Shown: piece by piece, positions 6,963-54,139 of the stretch
How positions within the stretch are numbered: the stretch's first letter is position 1
Layout of the letters: each line of letters begins with the position of its first letter
Assembly (NCBI RefSeq): GCF_001194135.2
Contig: NC_068984.1
Span: forward strand, 30,477,545 to 30,541,522
Direction: 5' to 3'
Length of the DNA stretch: 63,978 bases
Source: Octopus bimaculoides
Taxonomy: Eukaryota
Translations under genes and position numbers: made by a program
Notes under the pieces: generated by a model
The model's database searches: none
Told to the model about the DNA's origin: nothing
What the model saw: only the letters and a program-made list of their open reading frames with translations

Positions 6963-7084
6963 NNNNNNNNNNNNNNNNTATATATAACTAATTTACAGAC
7001 GAACCACCACTCTACAACTCAGAACCTATCCAAATCCATGCTGTGAGGCATGTACTATCTTAATATATCTAAGATTTTGAGTGC

Positions 7085-8285
7085 TACAGCTTGTTGAGTG
7101 CTACAGTTCAAACCCGTGGTTGATGCAAGTCTCATCCAGACCTAGGGTAACATAGTGGCAGAACGATTAGAGCTAAGAAACAAGCCTGGAAGTCCTGGAA
7201 GAATGGGGGTAGCAGGGTACTGTATCAGAATGCCAGAAGGGATGCTAGGAGACAAGTATATCTAGCTAAGGGAAAAGCAGAAAAAAAGAAGTTTGTCTGT
7301 GTTCAGCAATGCGAGGACCAAAGAATTGAAGTATTTTGGATTGCAAGTAAGTGTGTGAAATAAAATTGTGATGTCATAGGGGAGAAATGTGTCTGGATGG
7401 ATCATGGTGCTCTTGCGTGTAATGATTCCACAAAGAAAGAAGCTTGGAGATGCCATTATGAAAGACTGCTGAATGTGGAGATTTAATGGGAGGAGAGTCT
7501 GCCAGAGGTTGACCCAATTGAGGGACTGGCTACCCAAATCGAGAGTTCCATGGTAGATAAAGCAATTAAGGATATGAAGACAGGAAAAGCCCCCAGCCCA
7601 TTAAGACTCTCTGCTGAGATGCTTGAAATATCTGGCAGCGTGGGTTTTGGTCTAGTCACCAAAATTGTAAATCAGATGGTTCACGAAAGTGTCATACCCA
7701 GTGACAGGTGTAGCAACACCCTAGTCAACTGCTTCACAGGTAAAGGTGATGTATTAGATAGAAATAATTACAGAGGTATCAAATTGTTGGATCAGGTGAT
7801 GACAGTGACCGAGACCTTTGGTGATGTGCTGTGATTAAGAGGACCCGTCAAGCCAAGTGCACTCTTGACGGTGGCCACTAAAGAACACCTTTTGCACATT
7901 GGGCCTCACAGAGGCAAAGTGGCTGAGTTCCTTTTGAGCATTGGGCCTCATAGAGGCAAAGTGGTTGAGTTCCTTATGAGTGTTGGGCCTCATGGAGGCA
8001 ATGACCAAGACCTTTGACATTACACTGTGCTTGAGAAGATGACTCATCAAGCTGAGAAAAATTGCAGTCATTCAGATACTGGTGTTACACAAATTAGCAG
8101 CAGCTGTGCTGGTAGCACATAAAACCACCCACTGAGGGTGGTTGGCGTTCAGAAGGGCATCCAGCCATAGAAAAATATGCCGAATCAGACTGGAGTTAGG
8201 TGGAGTCTTCCAGCAAACCAGCCCAGTCAAACCGTCTAACCCATATCAGCGTTAACAACGGACGTTAAATGATGATGATGATGAT
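7085..8285 (+). mobile_element. Older RTE LINE, internally deleted, with repeated 3' ends
   Basis: WRCHYERLLNVE...MKTGKAPSP..SAEML...KGDVLDRNNYRGIKLLDQVM is fused directly to the C-terminal GACCGAGACCTTTGG, followed by 42-bp repeats and an RTE tail ending in (GAT)n. Confidence 0.8.
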
Positions 8286-8482
8286 GTGTGTGTGTGTATA
8301 CTCTTTTAAAGGATCTTAGTCAAAGAAACTGATCCAAGGACTTATTGTTTGTAAGCCTAGTACTTATTCTATCGGTCACTTGTGCTGAACCACTAATTTA
8401 TAGGGACACAAACACACCAGCATCAGTTGTGAAGCAATCATAGGGAGACAAAATAAGATACACACACACATAAATATACATG

Positions 8483-10665: not shown

Positions 10666-11626
10666 TGGTGCAATAAAGACTGGTGCAATAAAGACTTGGT
10701 GCAATAAAGACTGTAAACAAACAGGAAACAACTTCTATCTCATTCCAGGGTGAAAAACTAGAGGTAGTCGATAGCTTCCGCTATCTGGGCGACCAAGTTA
10801 GTAGTGGGGGTGGGTGCGCTGAAAGCGTAGCTGCTAGAATAAGAATAGCCTGGGCAAAGTTTAGAGAGCTCTTACCCCTGCTGGCGACAAAGGGACTCTC
10901 ACTCAGAGTAAAAGGCAGACTGTATGACGCATGCGTACGAACAGCCATACTACGTGGCAGTGAAACATGGGCTGTAACTGCTGAGGACATACGTAAGCTC
11001 GCAAGGAATGAAGCCAGTATGCTCCGTTGGATGTGTAATGTCAATGTGAATACNNNNNNNNNNNNNNNNNNNNNNNNNNNNNNNNNNNNNNNNNNNNNNN
11101 NNNNNNNNNNNNNNNNNNNNNNNNNNNNNNNNNNNNNNNNNNNNNNNNNNNNNNNNNNNNNNNNNNNNNNNNNNNNNNNNNNNNNNNNNNNNNNNNNNNN
11201 NNNNNNNNNNNNNNNNNNNNNNNNNNNNNNNNNNNNNNNNNNNNNNNNNNNNNNNNNNNNNNNNNNNNNNNNNNNNNNNNNNNNNNNNNNNNNNNNNNNN
11301 NNNNNNNNNNNNNNNNNNNNNNNNNNNNNNNNNNNNNNNNNNNNNNNNNNNNNNNNNNNNNNNNNNNNNNNNNNNNNNNNNNNNNNNTGCGGGTGGCACA
11401 TAAAAGACACCATTTCGAGCGTGGCCGTTTTCGTGTGGGTGACACGTAAAAGCACCCACTACACTCTCTGAGTGGTTGGCGTTAGGAAGGGCATCCAGCT
11501 GTAGAAACTCTGCCAAATTAGATTGGAGCCTGGTGTTGCCATCCGGTTTCACCAGTCCTCAGTCAAATCGTCCAACCCATGCTAGCATGGAAAGCGGACG
11601 TTAAACGATGATGATGATGATGATGA
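10666..11626 (+). mobile_element. Young 5'-truncated RTE-clade LINE (gap 11054-11387)
   Basis: Open frame GAIKTVNKQ...EVVDSFRYLGDQVS...KGRLYDACVRTAILRGSETW...MLRWMC, followed by the RTE 3' tail GGTTGGCGTTAGGAAGGGCATCCAGC...GTTAAACGATGATGATG. Confidence 0.9.
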
Positions 11627-13430: not shown

Positions 13431-14793
13431 TTTGTGTATTTATATACAGAGAGAGAGAGAGAAGTTCTACAAGCTTTGGAAAATTAGATGTATTCTACAA
13501 GAAAATAAGTTTGGTAACTGCTGATCTAGAATAATGAAACCTATCTCCTATTTTTAACATTTTTGTCAGTGTTAAGGATTCATCCAAAAAGGAAAAAAAA
13601 GAAACATTTATAATATTCGTTAATATTTGGTGTGTACTGTTCTTGTCATTGATTCTCAAGTTATTGCAACACTATAACTTATCTGATTCTCTTTATCAAA
13701 CATATTAATTGATTTCTAATATTATTTTCATCTCTTTTGAGATGGCTTTACTCTATTTTCCTATACTGAATTTTATGTAAATCTCCATTGAATATCTATG
13801 ACTCTAAATGATAGAGTTTCCTGTTCTCTGCCATCTATCTGCAGCATATAACCTGAATTAGTCTCTATATACTGAAATATCACTTTTCATTCATATAATG
13901 TTTAGGATGTGTATTGAATGTTATCACCAGACAGAAGACTATACAGAAAGGTTTCTCTTTGTATATTCATGTATTACTCGGAATTGTGTGTTTTAAGGAT
14001 TTTTTTTTATTATCGTTATCATCGTCATCATCATCATCAGCAGCAGTAGCATCAACAATTTGTTAAATATATCAAGAGATTCTTTTCTTAAAAAGAAAAT
14101 TAGCTACCACTAAAAATAAATGAATGAATAAATAAAACAAAAATTAGTTCAATGTTAGCAAATAATGTCTGAGAATACCCTAGGGATACTTACATACACA
14201 AATATTACTATTTTCTGGAACATTCCAGTATCTGTACTTTTAGCTTTATTTATAAAATTTGTTGTGTATCACTCCAGTTCTACAAATTTGAAATGTGATG
14301 ATGGGCCCATTATTTGACTGTCATAATATTTCAAAGTTAAAAGTTATGTCAGTGTTATTCTTCAATTTATATCTTTAAAACATAATTATTTAGAATTATT
14401 TTGTTCAAAATAACAACACTTTCATTAATTACAGTGAAGGGAACATCTGTTGAAAAATCGCAGGTGAAATAATTGATCAATTTCTTATCTAAAGGCTTCA
14501 CAGTTCAAGTAAAACAGTGCCAGTAAACTACAAATGTGAAACTAAATGCTACCCACTGAAGATATTAGGTCATAACATTATATAAGCACGTATATTATAG
14601 AATACATACAACAAACAGCTTACTGATAAAGTAGTTGCATGCTGTCAATTTAATGTGACAGTCCCCTGCAGGGAATAATACTACTGTTGGTTAGACTTAG
14701 GAAGCTATACCGCTTCCTGTCGGCCTTGACACATTTCTTGTGTCCTTATGTTTACAAGGGGGAGACTAGCACCTCTACCCAGTTAAGCCTGCA

Positions 14794-14836
14794 TCTAGAG
14801 ACATGTTTCTGAGTCTTTGCTTGTCATCAATCTAGA
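14794..14836 (-). ncRNA. Minimal type I hammerhead ribozyme, second-arm copy with a C3->U core mutation
   Basis: Minus strand reads TCTAGA-TTGATGA-CAAG-CAAAGA-CTCA-GAAAC-AT-GTC-TCTAGA. Stem I still pairs over 6 bp, but the core has UUGAUGA instead of CUGAUGA. Confidence 0.65.
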
Positions 14837-15078
14837 GTAGCATGACCTGCAAGTCAAAGATGCCCTTCAAGCTCTTGTAAACATATAATAATTCTAGTGA
14901 AATACATTCACTGATTTCAAATTTAAAAATAATACACTTCTAAATCTCTCAAAGAGATTTATGCAGTAAATTTAGAAATGTATTATTTCTAAATTTGAAA
15001 TCAGTGAATGTATTTCACTAGAATTATTATATGTTTACAAGAGCTTGAAGGGCATCTTCGACTAGCAGGTCATGCTAC

Positions 15079-15121
15079 TCCAGACTGATGACAAGCACAG
15101 ACTCAGAAACATGTCTCTGGA
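15079..15121 (+). ncRNA. Minimal type I hammerhead ribozyme (stem II degenerate)
   Basis: TCCAGA-CTGATGA-CAAG-CACAGA-CTCA-GAAAC-AT-GTC-TCTGGA. It has a 6-bp stem I (TCCAGA/TCTGGA), an intact CUGAUGA and GAAA core, a palindromic mini stem III (ACATGT) and a GUC triplet. Predicted cleavage is between 15115 and 15116. Stem II pairs fully only if CAAG/CTCA derive from CGAG/CTCG. Confidence 0.75.
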
Positions 15122-16645
15122 TGCAGGCTTAGCTGGGTAGAGGTGCTTGTCTCCTCCTTGAAAACATAAGGACACAGGAAATGTGTCAAGGCCGACAGGA
15201 AGCGGTGCAGCTTCCTAGGTCTAACCAACAGTAGTATTATTCCCTTCAAGGGACTGTCACATTAATTTGACAGCATACAACTACTTCATCGTATCACTAC
15301 TGCATAAATCTCTCTGAGAGATTTAGAAATGTATTATTTCTAAAAGCTTACTGATAGTTCTGCAGGTTTAATTAACAATTATGGTAACATATTTACAAAA
15401 GCAGAAAAATATTACTTCCAGAACATTGGATACTTGTATTATCATTATTCAAGTTCTTTATCACAGTTATTCACAGTGTAAGTTCTTTAAATATTTCCTT
15501 GTTTTACATTGTTATGCATCAGTATATAAAGCAGGTTCTTATTTCTCATCTTGCATAAAACACCATAATGCAAATGCTTCTTACTTCAGTCCATTCTCAT
15601 TTTAATTCTCTTACTTCCACTCACTTTATTCCTGCTTGCCACTAAAAGCAGTGCTATAAACATATCATCCTTCTGATTGCTTTCATTTTACTTCTCCTCC
15701 TGCCACTGACTTAATTTCTGTTTGTTGTTTGACACCCTACAACTTCTACTTTATCTTGCAGAAAATAAATGCACATTCTGAAATATTTTATGTGGATTAT
15801 TGTCATTTTTGTCATGGAAAATAACACCAGGCTTATGATGAGCTACTTTGTAGTCTATATATATGTTAAGTTCCTTGGCACTTTCTTATCTTCATTTTCT
15901 AAAACAATTATAGGTTCATATGGGTACTACAGTGACTTTTTCTCAAGAGAGATTATTTGCATTAATTATCCTCGTTATCGTACTGTAGTGTTGATGTTGA
16001 AGATTAAGATGTTGTTAAAAGTTTGTTGTATTACTTGTGATTTTAAAAGCTTTTAAAAGATCAAATATTCTAGGTTGACAGTACATCGCTTAGGATGTAG
16101 ACTATAACCTTGACAACCATTTTTCTCTTTGTAGTTCTAACACTTTTGGATTTCCTGGTATTTTACCATAAGTATTTAAGAGTGCCATTTGGTATTAACC
16201 CCCAATATCTGATCAACAGAAATGCAAATACTGACCAAGTCTATCATGGTCATTAGTAAACTCAGTTGAAGCTAACAGAGCATGTGAGGATGCAGTGGTC
16301 AATTGTTTCTCTGTTTAGACCACAAATGTGATAGGAAAGATCAGCACCATGTTTTAAGAATATTATTATTATTATTATTATTATTATTAGTCATATACAC
16401 ATAACAATTTAGACTGTTGGAAAAGAAAAATTCCTAACATAGGGCAACAACAAGTAACCTTAGAGGTCAAGATTCCTCCTAAGTATTTTAGCTGTCCGTA
16501 ATGATAGTGTTATCTGGAGCTGTACTAAATTAGGTTTCATGCCAATTTCCTCAATCCAACTGTTCAAATCTTTAGGGATAGTCCCTAATGCACCTATAAC
16601 TACTGAGATACATTTTACCCACACTTTTCATTATTATTATTATTA

Positions 16646-28280: not shown

Positions 28281-28669
28281 TGTAGTGGCGCGTGTGGCCG
28301 CCATTGGCCGCTATCTTGGGAAGTGCCATTGCGTATGTGCAAGGGACTTGCCGTCAGCGGAAGTACCCGGGCACGCATGCACAAGGCAACAGGTGGAGAG
28401 AGAGCAATAGCGTTCGATCTCTTCTCTCTCTAGCAGGGGTGGTGACAACACGTATCTCTCAGCGCGATACCGACATGTGATCGAAGCTTCCTTGGTATTC
28501 TAGCGGCATGCCTGTTCACCCTGGAACGAAACGGCTCTACACCAACCTAGAATAAATTATTGATCTGTTTTTACCGTTATCCCTCGTGTTGTTGTATTTC
28601 TAGATTTAATGATTAATATAAGAACTGGGGAGAGATGGCCGAGCCGTCATATCTCATCCAATTCTTATA
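28281..28669 (+). repeat. 5' LTR (389 bp, TG...TA)
   Basis: Begins TGTAGTGGCG and ends CCAATTCTTATA. It differs from the 3' LTR by 14 substitutions plus a 10-bp extra segment, CCATTGGCCG. Confidence 0.92.
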
Positions 28670-28671
28670 AC

Positions 28672-28691
28672 TGGTGACCCCTGACGTGATT
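28672..28691 (+). other. Primer-binding site complementary to tRNA-Trp
   Basis: TGGTGACCCC(T)GACGTGATT starts 2 nt after the 5' LTR. It is complementary to the eukaryotic tRNA-Trp 3' end ...AATCACGTCGGGGTCACCA apart from one inserted T. Confidence 0.85.
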
Positions 28692-29321
28692 CAGAAAAAA
28701 AACAACAACACAAGAGACGAGGAAATGGAACAAATCAACCAACTGCAACAGTTTTCTTACCCCGGAGAAAAATACCATACAGCCTGGAAACTGAACCATC
28801 AACTACTATGACACGAGCGTATTTCTCTCACCCACGTGTTTTCTTTCAACACCAACTGAGGCCGAGAAAAGAACAAACGGGTGAACAGTGATTTTTCTTT
28901 TCGCCTGACTCTACATGGCTTGAAAAACATAACTCGTCAAAAATGAAGAGACGACGGAAATTTTTTTTTTGTCGCGATGACAACGCCTGCCTTTCAAAGA
29001 AAAAAAATCTCCATTTTCTGTCACTCGCGTAAAGAGACGAAGAAAGAATGAAACAACAAGCATTTGCTACGAAGCAGCATGGTGTCAATTCAGTTGGACT
29101 ACATAACCTCAACAGAGTGTAACTTGTGTTACTAACAGGACAACTGTATATGACGAACACACGCATTTAATTTCTCTGTTCTGTCCTGTTTATATCTCTC
29201 TTGCAGAAAAAAAAATATATATACATATATACGAGAAGGTCGGTAAAATATTTTTTTTCACTGCACGCAGTACAAGCAACACACACGCCCACACACAAAC
29301 AAAATAAAAAAAAAATAAAAG

Positions 29322-30146
29322 NNNNNNNNNNNNNNNNNNNNNNNNNNNNNNNNNNNNNNNNNNNNNNNNNNNNNNNNNNNNNNNNNNNNNNNNNNNNNNN
29401 NNNNNNNNNNNNNNNNNNNNNNNNNNNNNNNNNNNNNNNNNNNNNNNNNNNNNNNNNNNNNNNNNNNNNNNNNNNNNNNNNNNNNNNNNNNNNNNNNNNN
29501 NNNNNNNNNNNNNNNNNNNNNNNNNNNNNNNNNNNNNNNNNNNNNNNNNNNNNNNNNNNNNNNNNNNNNNNNNNNNNNNNNNNNNNNNNNNNNNNNNNNN
29601 NNNNNNNNNNNNNNNNNNNNNNNNNNNNNNNNNNNNNNNNNNNNNNNNNNNNNNNNNNNNNNNNNNNNNNNNNNNNNNNNNNNNNNNNNNNNNNNNNNNN
29701 NNNNNNNNNNNNNNNNNNNNNNNNNNNNNNNNNNNNNNNNNNNNNNNNNNNNNNNNNNNNNNNNNNNNNNNNNNNNNNNNNNNNNNNNNNNNNNNNNNNN
29801 NNNNNNNNNNNNNNNNNNNNNNNNNNNNNNNNNNNNNNNNNNNNNNNNNNNNNNNNNNNNNNNNNNNNNNNNNNNNNNNNNNNNNNNNNNNNNNNNNNNN
29901 NNNNNNNNNNNNNNNNNNNNNNNNNNNNNNNNNNNNNNNNNNNNNNNNNNNNNNNNNNNNNNNNNNNNNNNNNNNNNNNNNNNNNNNNNNNNNNNNNNNN
30001 NNNNNNNNNNNNNNNNNNNNNNNNNNNNNNNNNNNNNNNNNNNNNNNNNNNNNNNNNNNNNNNNNNNNNNNNNNNNNNNNNNNNNNNNNNNNNNNNNNNN
30101 NNNNNNNNNNNNNNNNNNNNNNNNNNNNNNNNNNNNNNNNNNNNNN
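29322..30146. other. Assembly gap (825 N); other gaps at 6963-6978, 11054-11387, 42033-42161, 48183-48447, 53493-54139
   Basis: Runs of N. Confidence 0.99.
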
Positions 30147-30147
30147 C

Positions 30148-30978
30148 TACCATCCCGCTTCTAATGGGATGGTTGAGCGATTTCATAGGCAACTTAAGGC
30201 TGCCTTACGCGCCTCGCCCAACCCACAGTCTTGGGTTGAGTTTCTTCCGGTCGTCCTCCTTGGATGCCGGACTGCGGTCAAAGCTGACCTGGGTTTCTCC
30301 TCGGTGGAGCTTCTTTACTGTACCGCACTGGCGTTGCCTGGTACGATGGTGGTACCAGACTCGTCACAACCACCACATCCAGAGTCCTATGTTACTCGGT
30401 TGCAGGAGTATTTCTCAAATCTTCCAGCTATGGGTCCCAGACAACAGCCACATCCCTCTCAAGTACCAGCAGACATTGAGTCTTGGTCTCACGTGTTTAG
30501 TAGGGATGATTCTGTCAAAAGACCCCTTGTTTCTCCCTATAAATGACCCTTTCATGTGCTTTCTCGCACTCCACAGTTCTTCAAGGTCGACGCTAATGGT
30601 CGTACGGAGATTGTGTCTGTCGACCGTCTGAGAAAAGCGTACCTTGACACACCCTCAACTTCCGTGGACGACGTGCCCACTTTTCAAACACCGCACACAC
30701 CACTTTCAACATCATTACCACCACACACACCACTGTCAACATCTTTACCAATGCATTCACCAACATCAATACCATCACAAACGCACACACCAGAAACCAC
30801 TCCACCTTCGTCGTTGCGACAAAACTCAAATGACCCTTATATCACTAGGTCTGGCCGGACAGTGCATTGGCCAAATAAACTTTCCAAAATAATATACATT
30901 AGACATTTTTTGTGCCGCCGGCATTTCATTTCTCTGTACAAACAAGCATTGTTTTTCTTCCATTTCTCTGCACAGTAA
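30148..30978 (+). pseudogene. Gypsy integrase C-terminal half with a premature stop in the GPY/F motif
   Basis: YHPASNGMVERFHRQLKAALRA...W..FLPVVLLGCRTAVKADLGFSSVELLY...SPYK*PFHVLSR...VSVDRLRKAY...TRSGRTVHWP. TGA at 30544-30546 replaces the expected Gly, and the same frame continues afterwards. Confidence 0.9.
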
Positions 30979-31320
30979 CGTGCTAAAAGAAAATATGTAC
31001 ACATTACATATTGTTTCAACCTTTGCATACACATTTGCTCACGCCAACACCTTCTCCATCACCTTCGTTGCAACTTTCTTTCACACAGACCCTTTATCTC
31101 TAGGTCTGGCTGAACTTTTCATGTTGAACAGAACTTTTTTCTTACTCACATCCTGTCGGATGCAAAAGTTTTGCTTCCAGTACTGCATCCGACACAGCAT
31201 TGCTTTGCAAATTTATTGAGCTTGTTTTTTCATTGTATAATTTTAGCCGTGTTTCTGGGTTCGGCGGCCATCTTGTTTCCGCGCCCTCTACAATCTTTCC
31301 GTGTTTCGTGCTATGCACTC

Positions 31321-31330
31321 GGGGGGAAGA
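31321..31330 (+). other. Polypurine tract
   Basis: GGGGGGAAGA ends 3 nt before the 3' LTR. Confidence 0.8.
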
Positions 31331-31333
31331 TAT

Positions 31334-31712
31334 TGTAGTGGCGCGTGTGGCCGCTATCTTGGGAAGTGCCATTGCTCATGTGTAAGGGACTTGCCGTCAG
31401 CGGAAGTACCCGGGCACGCATGCGCAAGGCAACAGGTGGAGAGAGAGCAATAGAGTTCGATCTCTTCTCTCTCTAGCAGCGGTGGTGACAACACGTATCT
31501 CTCAGCTCGATACCGACACGTGGTCGAAGCTTCCTTGGTATTCTAGCGGCATGCCTGTTCACCCAGGAACGAAACGGCTTTACACCAACCTAGAATAAAT
31601 TATTGATCTGTTGTTACCGTTATCCCTCGTGTTGTTGTATTTCTAGATTTAATGATTAATATAAGAACTGGGGAGAGATGGCCGAGCCATCATATCTCAT
31701 CCAATTCATATA
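31334..31712 (+). repeat. 3' LTR (379 bp, TG...TA)
   Basis: Begins TGTAGTGGCG and ends CCAATTCATATA; direct repeat of 28281-28669. Confidence 0.92.
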
Positions 31713-41796: not shown

Positions 41797-42522
41797 ATCA
41801 TCATCATCGTTTAACGTCCGCTTTCCATGCTAGCATGGGTTGGACGATTTGACTGAGGACTGGTGAAACCGGATGGCAACACCAGGCTCCAGTCTGATTT
41901 GGCAGAGTTTCTACAGCTGGATGCCCTTCCTAACGCCAACCACTCAGAGAGTGTAGTGGGTGCTTTTACGTGTCACCCGCACGAAAACGGCCACGCTCGA
42001 AATGGTGTCTTTTATGTGCCACCCGCACAAGCNNNNNNNNNNNNNNNNNNNNNNNNNNNNNNNNNNNNNNNNNNNNNNNNNNNNNNNNNNNNNNNNNNNN
42101 NNNNNNNNNNNNNNNNNNNNNNNNNNNNNNNNNNNNNNNNNNNNNNNNNNNNNNNNNNNNNTCTTCTCACGCACAGCCCATTTCCAAAGGTCTCGGTCCG
42201 TAGTCATCGCCTCGGTGAGGCCCAATGTACGAAGGTCTTGCCTCACCACCTCAGCCCAGGTCTTCCTGGGCCTACCTCTTCCACGGGTTCCCTCAACTGT
42301 TAGGGTGTGGCACTTTTTCACGCAGCTATCCTCCTCCATTCTCACCACATGTCCATACCAGCGCAATCGTCTCTCTTGCACGCCACAACTGATGCTTCTA
42401 ATGTTCAGCTTTTCTCTCAAGATACTTACACTCTGACGGGTATTCACATTGACATTACACATCCAACGGAGCATACTGGCTTCATTCCTTGCGAGCTTAC
42501 GTATGTCCTCAGCAGTTACAGC
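41797..42522 (-). mobile_element. Young 5'-truncated RTE-clade LINE, near-identical to 10666-11626 and inverted relative to it
   Basis: ORF ...ERRLRWYGHVVRM...GTRGRGRPRKTW...RDLWKWAVREK. It is identical to the other copy over the 83 nt comparable in the ORF and has 3 mismatches in about 230 nt of tail. Confidence 0.9.
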
Positions 42523-42619
42523 TCTACTGGGTGCCCTTCTAAATGTCAGTCGTTTTACAGAGTGTACTGGGTACTTTTTATTGTGGCACCAGCTGCAGAA
42601 CAAGACACCCACAAATGAA

Positions 42620-43265
42620 AAGCAGGGTAGCACTGAAGGAGAAAAAAGTTGTCTTACATTAGAAGAGGAACATGACTACCTCAGTCCCAACGTACCAAGT
42701 ATTACAGGCATAACATTTACAGTTAACATATTCAATTCCAATGTCCTTCGACCATTTCTCTATATCTTTATTTATAGTTCCCAATGCACCAAATATTACA
42801 TTTACAGTTATCATATTCCAGATTCTTGCAATTTCACATTTTAAGGGATTGTATTTTTTTTGTTTTTCATTCTTTTTCTTTACAATCTTGGAATCAAGTG
42901 GATATGATGGATCAATTACTAAGCAACTTCGCTTTCCCTTCTCTATCATTGTTACATCTGATCTATTATTTTCTAATTTCTTATCTATTTGAATGGGGAA
43001 ATCCCACAGTATTTTGCATTTATTCAACTGCAGCACTCTTTCTCACTGATGATCATACCATGTACCTCCAACTCCAAATCTCCTTTTCTGACAAAGCTTC
43101 CAGTGTAAAACCTTCACAACTTAGTCATGCCTCCATTTTTTATATTCTTCCTATGCCAACTTGGGACATTCTGCGAGAATGTGTACAACTGTCTTGTTTT
43201 CCAAATAGCACACTTTTCAATACCAAATTCCATACCTACATCATTGAGAAAATGTGAACAGTATT
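42620..43265 (-). mobile_element. R4/Dong-type relic with internal deletion (RT motif joined to REL endonuclease)
   Basis: DVGMEFGIEKCA is followed closely by LHWKLCQK and KILWDFPIQIDKKLENNRSDVTMIEK..CLVIDPSYPLD..EKQKKYNPLKCEIARIW..GALG. Confidence 0.85.
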
Positions 43266-47410: not shown

Positions 47411-48636
47411 TCAATTTATTATGATTAATCATTTATAAAAATGTTCTTCGCCCATCGTTGTTGTCTCTTTTATTACACAGCGAAGAAAGTTTTGCAATGT
47501 AGCTGAGATGTCATGTTATGTTATTATATTTCACTTCCATATACTTCTTACTGCAGCAAGAACACAGAAGATTGATTCACATGCAAGCTCATTACATTAA
47601 AAATTACATCATTTCTTAAATGAACAATAAATGAACATCTGCATTATATAACTAAGAAAGTGTTTCATTCATTATTAAATGAAGAGGCAAATCTCAAATG
47701 AATCCTTTATATACACAATTTATCTATGTGTATTTATGTATGTATGCATGTATATATGTATGCATGTATATGCATGTGTGCATGTGTGTGCATATGTACA
47801 TAAATGCCTATTTTATTCTATTTTCCTACAACTATCTTGATGTATGCTTTGTTTTTACATATTATGAAGTTTAATATTATAGAGGAAAGAGGAAAACACA
47901 ATGGAGGTGATTTGACAGAAAAGATAGAATGTTATATTTAGTGCTTTACAAGGTTTACTTTCATTTCATTGCAGTTTATGCACAAACATTGACAGGGTCA
48001 TTTTGCCTTTTGTTGCTTTATTGTCGTTGTCGTCATAGTCGTCGTCTTCCAATTCCTCCTCTTCCACATCATCATTACCACCACCACCACCACCACCACA
48101 ACCACCACTGCCACCACCACTACCACCAATGCTACCACCGCTACCACAACTACTACCACCGCCACCACCACTGCCCCCCCCANNNNNNNNNNNNNNNNNN
48201 NNNNNNNNNNNNNNNNNNNNNNNNNNNNNNNNNNNNNNNNNNNNNNNNNNNNNNNNNNNNNNNNNNNNNNNNNNNNNNNNNNNNNNNNNNNNNNNNNNNN
48301 NNNNNNNNNNNNNNNNNNNNNNNNNNNNNNNNNNNNNNNNNNNNNNNNNNNNNNNNNNNNNNNNNNNNNNNNNNNNNNNNNNNNNNNNNNNNNNNNNNNN
48401 NNNNNNNNNNNNNNNNNNNNNNNNNNNNNNNNNNNNNNNNNNNNNNNTGGCCAAATGCCATCCCTGCTGCCAAAACCTTACCTGTGAATTCTTTATTCTT
48501 TTTTTATGCGAGGCACTCTTTATTCCACTGGACTTCACACCAATGAAAGTATCTCATTTTGGCATGTATTGTTTATAGGGGACATAACCAAACATTACTG
48601 CTGCTTAGTGTTAAATCAGTGTGAAGTTAACAGAGG

Positions 48637-52759: not shown

Positions 52760-53095
52760 TGTATAGTGTCGCCCTCCTGGCACTTGTGCCGGTGGCACAT
52801 TAAAAGTTATTCGAGCGAGATCATTGCCAGTGCTGCTGGACTGGCTCCCGTGCAGGTGGCACGTAAAATACACCATTTTGAGCATGGCCATTGCCAGTAC
52901 CGCCTGACTGGCCTTCGTGCCAGTGGCACGTAAAAGCACCCACTACACTCTCAGAGTGGTTGGCGTTAGGAAGGGCATCCAGCTGTAGAAACTCTGCCAA
53001 ATCAGATTGTAGCCATCTGGTTCACCAGTCCTCAGTCAAATCGTCCAACCCATGCTATCATGGAAAGCAGATGTTAAATGATGATGATGATGATG
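52760..53095 (+). mobile_element. Short RTE-tail element (non-autonomous or extreme 5' truncation)
   Basis: Three GTG(C/C)..GTGGCAC..AAAA modules followed by the same tail as the young RTE. Further tail-only copies: 8095-8285(+), 11997-12100(+), 20262-20500(-), 35770-35910(+), 42525-42600(-), 48725-48885(-), 53235-53447(+), 55407-55595(-). Confidence 0.8.
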
Positions 53096-53457
53096 ATTGG
53101 CTGATGGTTTTAATGTCTCAATGCTCTTTCGCCTTACTCATGTGCCACTTTCCATGAAGGGAAATACTATATATTTAATAAATCATGCCTACTTAAATAC
53201 GTTTCATCCACTATAGAGCCAATTCACAGTTATGGCAGATGCCAGTGTCACACAAATGGCACCCATGTCAGTGGCATGTAATAGCACCCATTACACTCTC
53301 GGAATGGTTGGTATTAGGAAGTATATCTGGCCATAGAAAACCATACCAAATCAGACTGGAATCTGGTGCAGCTTCCCAGTGCACCAGGCCAGGTTAAACT
53401 GTCCAACCCATGCCAGCATGGACAACAGACGTTAAATAATGATGATGAGACATATAT

Positions 53458-53492
<35 letters not shown>

Positions 53493-54139
53493 NNNNNNNN
53501 NNNNNNNNNNNNNNNNNNNNNNNNNNNNNNNNNNNNNNNNNNNNNNNNNNNNNNNNNNNNNNNNNNNNNNNNNNNNNNNNNNNNNNNNNNNNNNNNNNNN
53601 NNNNNNNNNNNNNNNNNNNNNNNNNNNNNNNNNNNNNNNNNNNNNNNNNNNNNNNNNNNNNNNNNNNNNNNNNNNNNNNNNNNNNNNNNNNNNNNNNNNN
53701 NNNNNNNNNNNNNNNNNNNNNNNNNNNNNNNNNNNNNNNNNNNNNNNNNNNNNNNNNNNNNNNNNNNNNNNNNNNNNNNNNNNNNNNNNNNNNNNNNNNN
53801 NNNNNNNNNNNNNNNNNNNNNNNNNNNNNNNNNNNNNNNNNNNNNNNNNNNNNNNNNNNNNNNNNNNNNNNNNNNNNNNNNNNNNNNNNNNNNNNNNNNN
53901 NNNNNNNNNNNNNNNNNNNNNNNNNNNNNNNNNNNNNNNNNNNNNNNNNNNNNNNNNNNNNNNNNNNNNNNNNNNNNNNNNNNNNNNNNNNNNNNNNNNN
54001 NNNNNNNNNNNNNNNNNNNNNNNNNNNNNNNNNNNNNNNNNNNNNNNNNNNNNNNNNNNNNNNNNNNNNNNNNNNNNNNNNNNNNNNNNNNNNNNNNNNN
54101 NNNNNNNNNNNNNNNNNNNNNNNNNNNNNNNNNNNNNNN

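Follow-up and report, generated by a model that had tools for sequence, protein, structure and literature searches.

Within the stretch of DNA analysed here (63,978 nucleotides, referred to hereafter as the 64-kb window), a single insertion is enclosed by an exact 12-bp target-site duplication (TSD), with the 12-mer AGCTTACTGATA matching only at 14617–14628 (left copy) and 15345–15356 (right copy). Between the two copies lie head-to-head repeats of one 351-nt unit, an arrangement that the earlier note had claimed and that is borne out in each of its parts. The right arm (14970–15344, forward strand) comprises a full unit (14970–15320) and a 24-nt restart (15321–15344, 100% identical to 14970–14993), i.e., positions 1–351 plus 1–24 in unit numbering, and is bordered at its 3′ end by the right TSD. 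The left, inverted arm (14629–14968, reverse strand) runs from unit position 329 to 351 and onward through 1–317, where it meets the left TSD at its 3′ end; it aligns with the right arm over 340 nt without a gap (21/340 mismatches in our own alignment), confirming that it holds 340 of the 351 nt in a different circular permutation. One orphan base at the head-to-head junction (14969) matches neither unit position 351 nor 328. A repeat finder places the inverted repeat at 14625–14945/14970–15290, the final 4 nt of which intrude into the TSD, and the combination of inverted repeat and TSD far exceeds chance expectation. The six local hairpins previously named in this sequence are all present, and no further copies of the unit were found in the 64-kb window.

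The two ends of the insertion are not alike. The right end alone carries a 58-nt “tail” (15287–15344, forward strand) that includes two terminal hairpins (15306–15324 and 15322–15344), while the outer flank of the left arm, TATCAGTA, matches the unit sequence at 15292–15299 in 7 of 8 positions (chance ~0.02).

Comparison of the arms with each other, and with other copies of the unit, informs on the template from which they were made. At four positions where 87–99% of copies differ, the two arms have the same rare state (15049A, 15050G, 15093A, and 15139A), and on sequence grounds both derive from one template lineage; the presence of one TSD around both arms, together with these four shared variants, points to one event with one template as its source. 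Each arm runs unbroken through the predicted ribozyme cleavage site (see below) and through the unit junction. Read in order, the arms span 749 nt, or 2.13 units (329–351, 1–317, 34 nt skipped, 1–351, 1–24), and since 2.13 units are needed to account for the two together, the template must have been multimeric or circular. The arms have decayed unequally since (~16 private changes against ~5). The insertion occupies the orthologous site in two related organisms, B and C, where flank divergence of 4–5% fits the ~3% decay per arm; no empty site was found, with B and C carrying the insertion, coverage of organism D too low, and organism E being without the family.

Copy number and termini of the repeat family

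The 351-nt unit (GC 0.41) is non-coding, a trimer of it running for at most 52 codons without a stop, and constitutes a dispersed repeat of ~10^4 copies in four related organisms. This estimate derives from a word depth of ~1e6 over the unit, compared with 60–79 in the flanks, and establishes that the unit is multi-copy rather than single-copy. Word depth falls ~20–70-fold toward the unit 5′ start, a strong graded 5′ truncation, and the bulk of family copies are truncated monomers. The 3′ ends fall into two classes, with the main class stopping at 15341–15345 and a smaller class at 15284–15289, in both cases followed by unrelated AT-rich or (TA)n flanks. The two arms of our insertion use one terminus each: the right arm ends at the family “long” 3′ terminus, and the left arm at the “short” 3′ terminus, equivalent to 15286.

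Tandem junctions (15320 to 14970, giving the 351-nt period) are found occasionally in DNA of organisms A, B, and C (22 reads in dataset X22; contigs in X2, X5, X11, X13, and X14). A search upstream of the unit start mostly retrieved abundant 3′ tails, since 14970–14993 and 15321–15344 are the same sequence; there is indirect support that copies reaching the unit start often continue into a preceding unit. We also observe more than 10 distinct junctions between opposite strands, at variable positions and each at single-copy depth. The earlier note had set variable permutations against the fixed terminal inverted repeats (TIRs) of a DNA transposon, and the family displays no fixed TIR ends: its copies are fixed at the 3′ side and truncated to graded extents at the 5′ side, their inverted junctions vary in position, and tandem junctions occur in some.

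Two other assignments were rejected. A depth peak at 15087–15125 in assembler contigs had suggested that the ribozyme was common to other families; raw reads display a smooth gradient only, and we attribute the peak to the collapse of unitigs where the sequence varies less. For a SINE derived from tRNA, 5S, or 7SL RNA, ARAGORN found no tRNA in the window, and an Rfam search of the element at E ≤ 10 yielded nothing matching tRNA, 5S, or 7SL.

The hammerhead motif and its variation across copies

The right arm contains a type I hammerhead motif (15079–15121, forward strand) that reads TCCAGA-CTGATGA-CAAGCACAGACTCA-GAAAC-AT-GTC-TCTGGA. Stem I (15079–15084 with 15116–15121) leads into the core CUGAUGA (15085–15091), followed by the stem II region (15092–15105), GAAA (15106–15109), the palindrome ACAUGU that forms stem III and its loop (15109–15114), and C17 (15115), such that cleavage is predicted between 15115 and 15116. 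The core required of type I is thereby complete, its parts in order among the three helices and helix I open, both in this arm and in the family. The claim that each arm carries such a ribozyme holds for the right arm only: the left-arm motif (14794–14836, reverse strand) has decayed, with a stem I of TCTAGA/TCTAGA, a C3>T change at 14830 that leaves a core of TTGATGA (hence not intact), and a broken stem II. Stem II of the right arm is also broken, by an A at 15093 where the family has G. With C3>U in the left core and no G–C pair at the base of stem II in the right arm, the insertion is predicted to be dead now.

Taken on this copy alone, the ribozyme call is weak, given that the motif stands at chance level and Rfam is silent. 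The bare pattern CTGATGA-N6-30-GAAAC turns up in 26% of shuffled windows, and the Rfam hammerhead models (Hammerhead_1, _3, _II, HH9, and HH10) give no match in the window at gathering score. The Rfam comparison proposed for this locus thus came back negative, no hammerhead model matching at E ≤ 10 over 14300–15700. Rfam did return strong matches to plant MIR models; these were discarded as generic responses of long-hairpin models to the inverted repeat.

The family, rather than the single copy, informs on constraint, and its consensus does retain the full hammerhead core. Variants at a frequency of at least 3% occur at 14 of the 43 motif positions, and the core is hit only at the tolerant position U7 (3.6%; P ~0.003), leaving C3, U4, G5, A6, G8, A9, G12–A14, A15.1, U16.1, and C17 variant-free (<3%). 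Two stem I pairs vary in a compensatory manner (15084/15116, A–T to G–C; 15080/15120, C–G to T–A), with matched frequencies that co-track over seven datasets, from which we infer linkage on single molecules. A pair of changes in the helix III palindrome, 15111A>T and 15112T>A (each 13–16%, and linked on the same argument of matched frequencies), converts ACATGT to ACTAGT and so keeps it palindromic. Stem II is the weak element: its consensus has three Watson–Crick pairs (GAG/CUC) and a C·A apposition beside the core, which is U–A in ~18% of copies, making it weaker than the usual helix closed by G10.1–C11.1. Of the stem II consensus proposed earlier, CGAG/CTCG, the 5′ strand is found as CGAG (15093 is G in 92–98%), and the 3′ strand is CTCA, not CTCG.

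Beyond the motif proper, stem I extends into a helix of ~45 bp (5′ strand 15030–15084, 3′ strand 15116–15168, forward strand), as identified from the consensus fold and covariation. Folding of the consensus unit gives −125.3 kcal/mol (z = −6.7), and subfamilies differ within this helix by three compensatory pairs, the third being 15159/15039, and by four wobble-to-Watson–Crick changes. The family variation supports a putative type I hammerhead under constraint and, as read from these patterns of substitution, the core, stem I, the stem III palindrome, and the long stem I extension are kept by selection during subfamily divergence.

At the RNA level, RNA-seq reads over the unit occur equally in both orientations, 57–66% of them extend into unrelated flanks, and coverage follows genomic copy number; unit RNA thus looks mostly passively co-transcribed. 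Reads spanning the 15320 to 14970 junction, which the earlier note had suggested looking for, are present (15, 6, and 8 reads, and additionally at one variant locus). Its other suggestion, that RNA ends should collect at the cleavage site, found no counterpart, with no pile-up seen at 15115/15116 in ordinary cDNA libraries, which capture such ends poorly; flat unit-length coverage and a circle signature were likewise not seen in RNA-seq.

Origin of the insertion and its relatives

We consider the locus to be, probably, the product of one ancient retrotransposition of a 351-nt non-coding hammerhead element, either a non-LTR retrozyme or a non-autonomous element dependent on Penelope-like elements (PLEs). 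The hammerhead element is a further family of this already described class and no new kind of element. In the mechanism that we propose, a multimeric or circularised transcript would have been copied by target-primed reverse transcription (TPRT) from both nicked strands of the target: priming from the bottom-strand nick at the “long” terminus (15344) would give the right arm, the inverted arm would arise where the top-strand nick primed at the “short” terminus (the 15286 equivalent) one lap or unit earlier, and the two cDNA ends would then be joined head to head, with the staggered nicks yielding the 12-bp TSD. The most likely enzyme would be an RT/GIY-YIG endonuclease of Penelope-like type supplied in trans. 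Where copies are active, ribozymes dimerized through the palindromic helix III would cleave multimeric RNA, and the long helix would keep the ends together for a host RNA ligase to ligate. Reverse transcription from a template of more than one unit with inversion at integration, as envisaged in the earlier note, fits both the anatomy of the locus and the PLE pattern (PMC8557442).

A more specific version of this scheme, which we put forward tentatively and regard as possible rather than probable, is that the arms are a fossil of rolling-circle reverse transcription, in which a Penelope-type RT, priming both strands at two preferred sites, would have made more than two laps of a ligated 351-nt hammerhead circRNA. 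It is consistent with both arms crossing the cleavage site intact and sharing rare variants; if true, the locus would be direct DNA-level evidence that circles, besides tandem transcripts, serve as transposition template.

Published metazoan non-LTR retrozymes provide the closest frame for the unit (comparison based on Cervera & de la Pena, 2020, PMC7229834, and Li, Clavereau & Pollet, 2026, bioRxiv 10.64898/2026.07.22.740005). Like them, it is a non-coding unit within the 170–400 nt range and of low GC, and a dependence on PLEs has been proposed for these elements (PMC7229834; bioRxiv 10.64898/2026.07.22.740005). Highly self-paired RNA, TSDs longer than 4 bp, tandem junctions, and copies in the thousands are further points in common, and the match to amphibian retrozymes extends to the ribozyme itself (type I, 6-bp helix I, short helix II, 2-bp helix III, and a palindromic loop calling for dimers). 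Our family differs in consisting mostly of dispersed 5′-truncated monomers with defined 3′ ends, not tandem arrays, and in having helix II closed by C·A, not G–C; it also differs in being known from sequence and ordinary RNA-seq, circles and self-cleavage being predicted only.

For PLEs, we drew on Cervera & de la Pena, 2014 (PMC4209133) and Craig et al, 2021 (PMC8557442). By the hallmarks published for them, PLE insertions are highly truncated at the 5′ end and partly tandem, with an inverted, 5′-truncated copy alongside, TSDs of variable length, a 30–40-bp tail at one end, (TA)n targets, and a pLTR that carries a hammerhead (PMC8557442). The insertion signature is recognizable here in 5′ truncation, a partial tandem (pseudo-LTR), an inverted 5′-truncated copy, a one-sided tail, and the TSD, and the likeness continues in variable TSDs, AT-rich or (TA)n targets, and the heaviness of the truncation. 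As with PLE pLTR hammerheads, the ribozyme is sense-oriented within the repeated terminal part and has a palindromic helix III (PMC4209133, PMC8557442). The differences are that our element has no RT or GIY-YIG ORF and measures 351 nt against ~3 kb or more, that its tail is 58 nt against the published 30–40 bp, and that PLE minimal hammerheads typically have a longer helix II (6–8 bp) and a shorter helix I. No PLE ORF was found in the 64-kb window, and a Pfam search with five repeat-derived ORFs gave no match; active Penelope families are reported from octopus (PMC13282606).

The same structure could be read as a SINE-like element moved by a LINE reverse transcriptase (RTE, CR1, or L1-type), with L1-style twin priming producing the inversion, the hammerhead a passenger or processing module, and PLEs uninvolved. 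In LINE-1 twin-priming inversions, a single linear RNA supplies both segments, each from a different part of it. Our locus resembles these in its head-to-head segments, in having both 3′ ends at TSDs with 34 nt of template missing between, and in possible microhomology at the internal priming site, for which the 7/8 match of TATCAGTA to 15292–15299 is suggestive; twin priming would also account for the 5′ truncation, for a TSD of 12 bp, and for an inverted 5′ segment with both 3′ ends pointing outward. The two terminal hairpins (15306–15344) could in addition be a stringent-type LINE recognition signal, and LINE fragments are present in the same 64-kb window. Unlike the segments of a twin-primed LINE-1, however, each arm is nearly a whole unit (2.13 units together), and the element has neither a poly(A) or simple-repeat tail nor a tRNA, 5S, or 7SL head. 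Also weighing against LINE mobilization, which we hold to be unlikely, are the (TA)n type of the family flanks, the partial tandems, one-sided tail, and recurrent inverted copies, which are absent from non-LTR TPRT (PMC8557442), and the short palindromic helix III, which in hammerheads is a PLE and retrozyme signature (PMC4209133, PMC7229834).

It is less likely again that the hammerhead likeness is incidental or long dead and that a structured retroposon keeps its long hairpin for RT recognition or RNA stability. Such a view would accommodate the insignificance of the bare motif in the window, the silence of Rfam, the weak stem II, RNA data without cleavage ends, and the poor in vitro cutting of PLE minimal hammerheads (PMC4209133). 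It sits poorly with variation that is specific to a hammerhead, the catalytic positions being invariant while U7, loops, and paired stem positions vary, and with a two-base loop III change that keeps self-complementarity, a property relevant only to a dimeric helix III. Viewed in isolation, the locus resembles a 320-bp TIR element with a TSD, and Rfam long-hairpin miRNA models score on it, as might be expected of a foldback or MITE DNA transposon with long TIRs; the family, however, has one fixed end, one graded end, tandems, and scattered inverted junctions, with no fixed TIRs, and each arm of the locus holds its own circular permutation of the unit. The single TSD enclosing both arms and their four common rare variants argue equally against two independent (nested) insertions or a later inverted duplication, and we reject this whole group of explanations as highly improbable.

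High-copy short non-coding repeats with a type I hammerhead and a weak helix III are also represented by schistosome Sm-alpha, which is dispersed and SINE-like, and by amphibian satellite-2, which is tandem in newt and axolotl (families cited in PMC4209133/PMC7229834). Compared by description only, these differ in their loop 1–loop 2 tertiary contacts or closed helix I, which were not identified here, and in that helix I of our element continues into the ~45-bp helix. Among the papers searchable, none mentions a cephalopod family of such retrozymes or ribozyme elements, and a literature search for the exact ribozyme sequence found nothing.

No new mechanism is shown by this locus. What it does is bring together a unit of retrozyme type and the integration signature of PLEs (tandem plus inverted), supporting the proposal that animal retrozymes are PLE dependents, and the family, at ~10^4 copies in each of the four related organisms, is a very abundant hammerhead-bearing addition to the retrozyme/PLE-dependent class. 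If the cephalopod origin supposed in the earlier note holds, that addition would fall in the cephalopods; octopus repeat annotations contain large numbers of “unclassified SINEs”. For a hammerhead of the dimer type, the family also gives a naturally occurring record of covariation that is unusually clean and that extends to the helix III change preserving the palindrome; the family backs the ~45-bp extension of helix I as well.

The inverted insertion at 14617–15356

The two head-to-head arms of the element sit inside exact copies of a 12-mer, AGCTTACTGATA (14617–28 and 15345–56), that occurs nowhere else in the window, bearing out the TSD of an earlier sequence-only note. The right arm (14970–15344, plus strand) consists of the 351-nt unit and, as that note had claimed, a 24-nt restart (15321–44, 100% identical to 14970–93). 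The left arm (14629–14968, minus strand) was correctly placed in another register, with a gapless alignment of 340 nt (21 mismatches) to unit positions 329–351 and then 1–317, which makes the two arms distinct circular permutations of the same unit. All six small hairpins listed in the note were found. The 3′ end of each arm adjoins a TSD copy, and a single orphan base (14969) marks the meeting point of the 5′ ends; the 321-nt arms reported by the repeat finder take in 4 nt of chance match within the TSD.

Rfam models for plant microRNA precursors, MIR8562 and MIR8007 among them, score 85–95 bits at 14817–15096, below their gathering scores, simply on account of the long hairpin that the inverted dimer forms; plant MIR identity was discarded, these high scores being a generic long-hairpin match to an inverted repeat. 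If transcribed, the locus would give a ~320-bp, 94%-paired dsRNA that could enter small-RNA or RNA-editing pathways.

A hammerhead had been proposed in each arm. The right arm has the motif (15079–15121, plus strand; TCCAGA-CUGAUGA-(14 nt)-GAAAC-AU-GUC-UCUGGA), whereas its left-arm counterpart (14794–14836, minus strand) carries C3>U (standard hammerhead numbering), so that the core is not intact. The stem II region of the right-arm copy (CAAG...CUCA) is unable to pair, the CTGATGA-N6-30-GAAAC pattern is present in 26% of shuffled windows, and Rfam hammerhead models gave no match to the window copy at gathering score and none at E ≤ 10. A ribozyme call would not be justified from this copy by itself, and the copy is now dead. 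Left-arm stem I is altered on both strands with pairing kept (C>T at 14834, G>A at 14796), a double change that could be chance (roughly 0.04), given the many transitions.

The dispersed family and its hammerhead

The window holds no further copies of the unit. The supposition that the monomer is multi-copy was confirmed in public reads and contigs: assembler word depth over 15190–15333 is ~1e6 in one sequencing run (X1), versus 60–79 in single-copy flanks, and similar depth ratios in organisms B, C and D (coded source organisms) give ~10^4 copies each; the family was not found in a fifth, organism E. Raw DNA read depth climbs smoothly, ~70-fold, from the unit start (14970–82) to ~15190, a gradient that is heavy 5′ truncation. 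Among copies reaching the unit start, ~1/3–1/2 extend into a preceding unit (raw reads), and organisms A, B and C all have 351-nt tandem junctions (15320>14970) in their DNA. The main 3′ terminus lies at 15341–45, followed by unrelated AT-rich sequence (loose-end agreement 0.4–0.5 only), and a second, smaller class lies at 15284–89, often abutting (TA)n. In the window copy the left arm uses exactly the second of these termini, its last base corresponding to 15286, and the right arm the first, leaving a one-ended 58-nt “tail” (15287–15344). Other loci, too, carry head-to-head arrangements, with differing breakpoints, as shown by more than 10 distinct “opposite strands” junctions of single-copy depth. 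A MITE is ruled out by the 5′ truncation, recurrent 3′ termini, tandem junctions and varied inverted junctions.

Positions 14992 and 14993 are both T in 40–58% of family copies, the unit junction then reading ATTTCTA-TTTTT-GAAATC. Many copies end within or just past this T5 run (14990–14997, 15341–15344), with loose ends starting TTTTT; possible roles of the run are pol III-type termination and target annealing for priming, and the lineage of the window copy has AAATTT in its place. Small indels occur among subfamilies at 15280–15297 (many copies ...CATACCATCACTTTATCGTGCTG-CAT versus ...CATACAACTACTTCATCGTATCACTACTG-CAT in the window), and the 15297/98 break falls exactly where the left arm has its 5′ end (unit position 329). 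Many reads of runs X22–X24 (“GENOMIC OTHER” DNA libraries) contain a palindromic linker-like GGTTCGTCCATCGATCGATGGACGAACC; these runs look like the product of proximity ligation, and their rare joints may hence be ligation chimeras, with no effect on base frequencies.

At the family level, the majority bases G at 15093 (92–98%) and A at 15098 (97–99.8%) give the consensus CUGAUGA-C-GAG-CAAAGA-CUC-A-GAAAC, which folds with stems I and II. The predicted stem II, CGAG/CUCG, thus holds on its 5′ side (C-GAG) but not on its 3′ side; helix II has three Watson-Crick pairs plus a C.A apposition beside the core, and is the weak point of the ribozyme case. Variants of at least 3% within 15079–15121 fall at just 14 positions (raw DNA reads, three libraries), none of them at C3, U4, G5, A6, G8, A9, G12–A14, A15.1, U16.1 or C17 (hypergeometric P about 0.003). 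U7 (15089; variant at 3.6%), the sole varying core position here, is a site known to accept any base. In stem I, pair 15084/15116 changes from A-T to G-C (47–50% and 42–46%) and 15080/15120 from C-G to T-A (43–47% and 41–45%); these four frequencies co-vary over seven datasets and filters, which is taken as evidence, from matched frequencies rather than haplotypes, that the changes are linked. The changes 15111 A>T and 15112 T>A (both 13–16%) convert ACAUGU to ACUAGU with self-complementarity retained, and C>U at 15092 (beside A9; 16–20%) allows pairing with A15105; further variable sites are 15093, 15095, 15098–15100 in loop II, and 15105. According to Cervera & de la Pena (2014, PMC4209133), metazoan type I/PLE (Penelope-like element) hammerheads act as dimers and combine a helix I of 6 bp with a short helix II and a helix III of 1–2 bp capped by a small palindromic loop; an additional base often separates A9 from 10.1. 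The family motif fits this description. The reading of the family as a retroelement whose hammerhead has been kept by selection is well supported.

Origin of the locus and relation to known elements

Four states common to both arms (15049A, 15050G, 15093A, 15139A) are absent from 87–99% of family copies, and the arms therefore descend from one template lineage. Their 21 differences are mostly private to one arm, the other retaining the family base, as expected of decay following a single event. The arms have decayed unequally (~16 private changes in the left arm, 12 of them G/C>A/T transitions, and ~5 in the right). Organisms B and C share the insertion, and the 4–5% divergence of its flanks from the window fits ~3% decay per arm. 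Both arms cross the ribozyme cleavage site and the 351>1 junction, and the right arm exceeds one unit; a cleaved linear monomer cannot have yielded either. The template needed, in register, is 329–351, 1–317, a 34-nt skip, 1–351 and 1–24 (749 nt, 2.13 units), so the source must have been a multimeric transcript, or else a circle traversed more than twice, as one molecule or two.

Both nicked target strands would have primed reverse transcription, placing both arm 3′ ends against TSD copies. For a LINE this outward-3′-end topology would be twin priming; for a PLE it is the standard tandem/inverted outcome. PLE insertions combine high 5′ truncation, partial tandems as pseudo-LTRs, an adjoining inverted 5′-truncated copy, a one-ended tail, variable TSD, a preference for (TA)n targets and hammerheads within the pLTR, structures not seen in target-primed reverse transcription of non-LTR elements (Craig et al. 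2021, PMC8557442), and the insertion pattern of the family agrees point for point. The left-arm flank (14609–14628; minus strand TATCAGTA) matches unit 15292–99 (TATCACTA, 5 nt past the arm's stop) at 7/8 positions (chance about 0.02, random window 8-mers), a weak hint of possible microhomology annealing at an internal priming site.

Among known classes, metazoan non-LTR retrozymes (PMC7229834) come closest. The family resembles them in unit size, low GC (0.41), non-coding character, hammerhead type and self-paired RNA, but differs in consisting mostly of scattered, truncated monomers whose 3′ ends are defined (monomer proportions in retrozymes run from 0 to 1; Li et al.). A further difference is that cleavage and circles, shown in those described families, are predictions here. 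In the literature searched, cephalopod hammerhead elements go unmentioned except for a giant squid count of 235 Rfam hammerhead_1 hits (PMC6962438); octopus repeat surveys describe active Penelope families and hundreds of unclassified SINE families, ribozymes being unmentioned (PMC13282606, PMC8967140).

Unit RNA and other features of the window

Opened at the predicted cleavage site, the consensus unit folds at −125.3 kcal/mol (z = −6.7; window copy, −4.25 on the plus and −4.04 on the minus strand). A ~45-bp helix (15116–15168 with 15030–15084) prolongs stem I and contains a third compensatory pair (15159/15039, T-A to C-G, 34% and 28%, subfamily variants), four G.U to G-C or A-U changes (15070, 15068, 15063, 15058) and a single disruptive subfamily change (15125); the departures of the window copy from consensus (15049/50, 15139, 15155, 15161) all destabilise it. 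Following cleavage, both RNA ends would lie adjacent at the base of this helix. Retrozyme RNAs circularised by a tRNA ligase have this same arrangement (Cervera & de la Pena 2020, PMC7229834), from which we infer, by analogy, that the octopus family may use such a step.

The element is present in three RNA-seq runs and four RNA contig sets, its reads equal in both orientations, 57–66% extending into unrelated sequence, and coverage tracking genomic copy number. Of the RNA signatures named in the earlier note, reads spanning 15320>14970 exist (15, 6 and 8), but no read ends pile up at 15115/15116 in these ordinary cDNA libraries. A variant tandem junction, 15343-TT-14994, has 13–30 RNA reads per run with only 2–3 start points, probably from one or few expressed loci. 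Relative to unit-start coverage, junction reads are commoner in RNA than in DNA, although numbers are small. These data are compatible with mostly passive co-transcription, and ordinary cDNA libraries neither show nor exclude circles. Against DNA copy number, the unit-junction region (14996–15021, 15295–15344) is ~5–6x richer in RNA than mid-unit (runs X41–X43, X26, X27).

Elsewhere in the window, direct repeats at 28281–28669 and 31334–31712 (389 bp, 93.8% identical) lie either side of an assembly gap and two ORFs (30169–30978, MVERFHRQLK...), which gave no Pfam match and whose sequence resembles a retroviral-type integrase C-terminus; 28281–31712 is probably an LTR retrotransposon remnant. 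Inverted copies of another repeat (11388–11618 and 41797–42027, 98.7% identical) each abut an assembly gap, with more diverged relatives near 8100–8300 and 52850–53450, and the adjoining ORF at 41944–42633 (minus strand) contains a stretch, ...RRLRWYGHVVRMEED...GRGRPRKTW..., of a kind typical of LINE reverse-transcriptase C-termini. The assembly here is draft, repeat-rich and AT-rich (GC 0.35), with abundant (TA)n, (TG)n and (ATT)n tracts and six N runs (6963–6978, 11054–11387, 29322–30146, 42033–42161, 48183–48447 and 53493–54139), mostly beside repeats or microsatellites.
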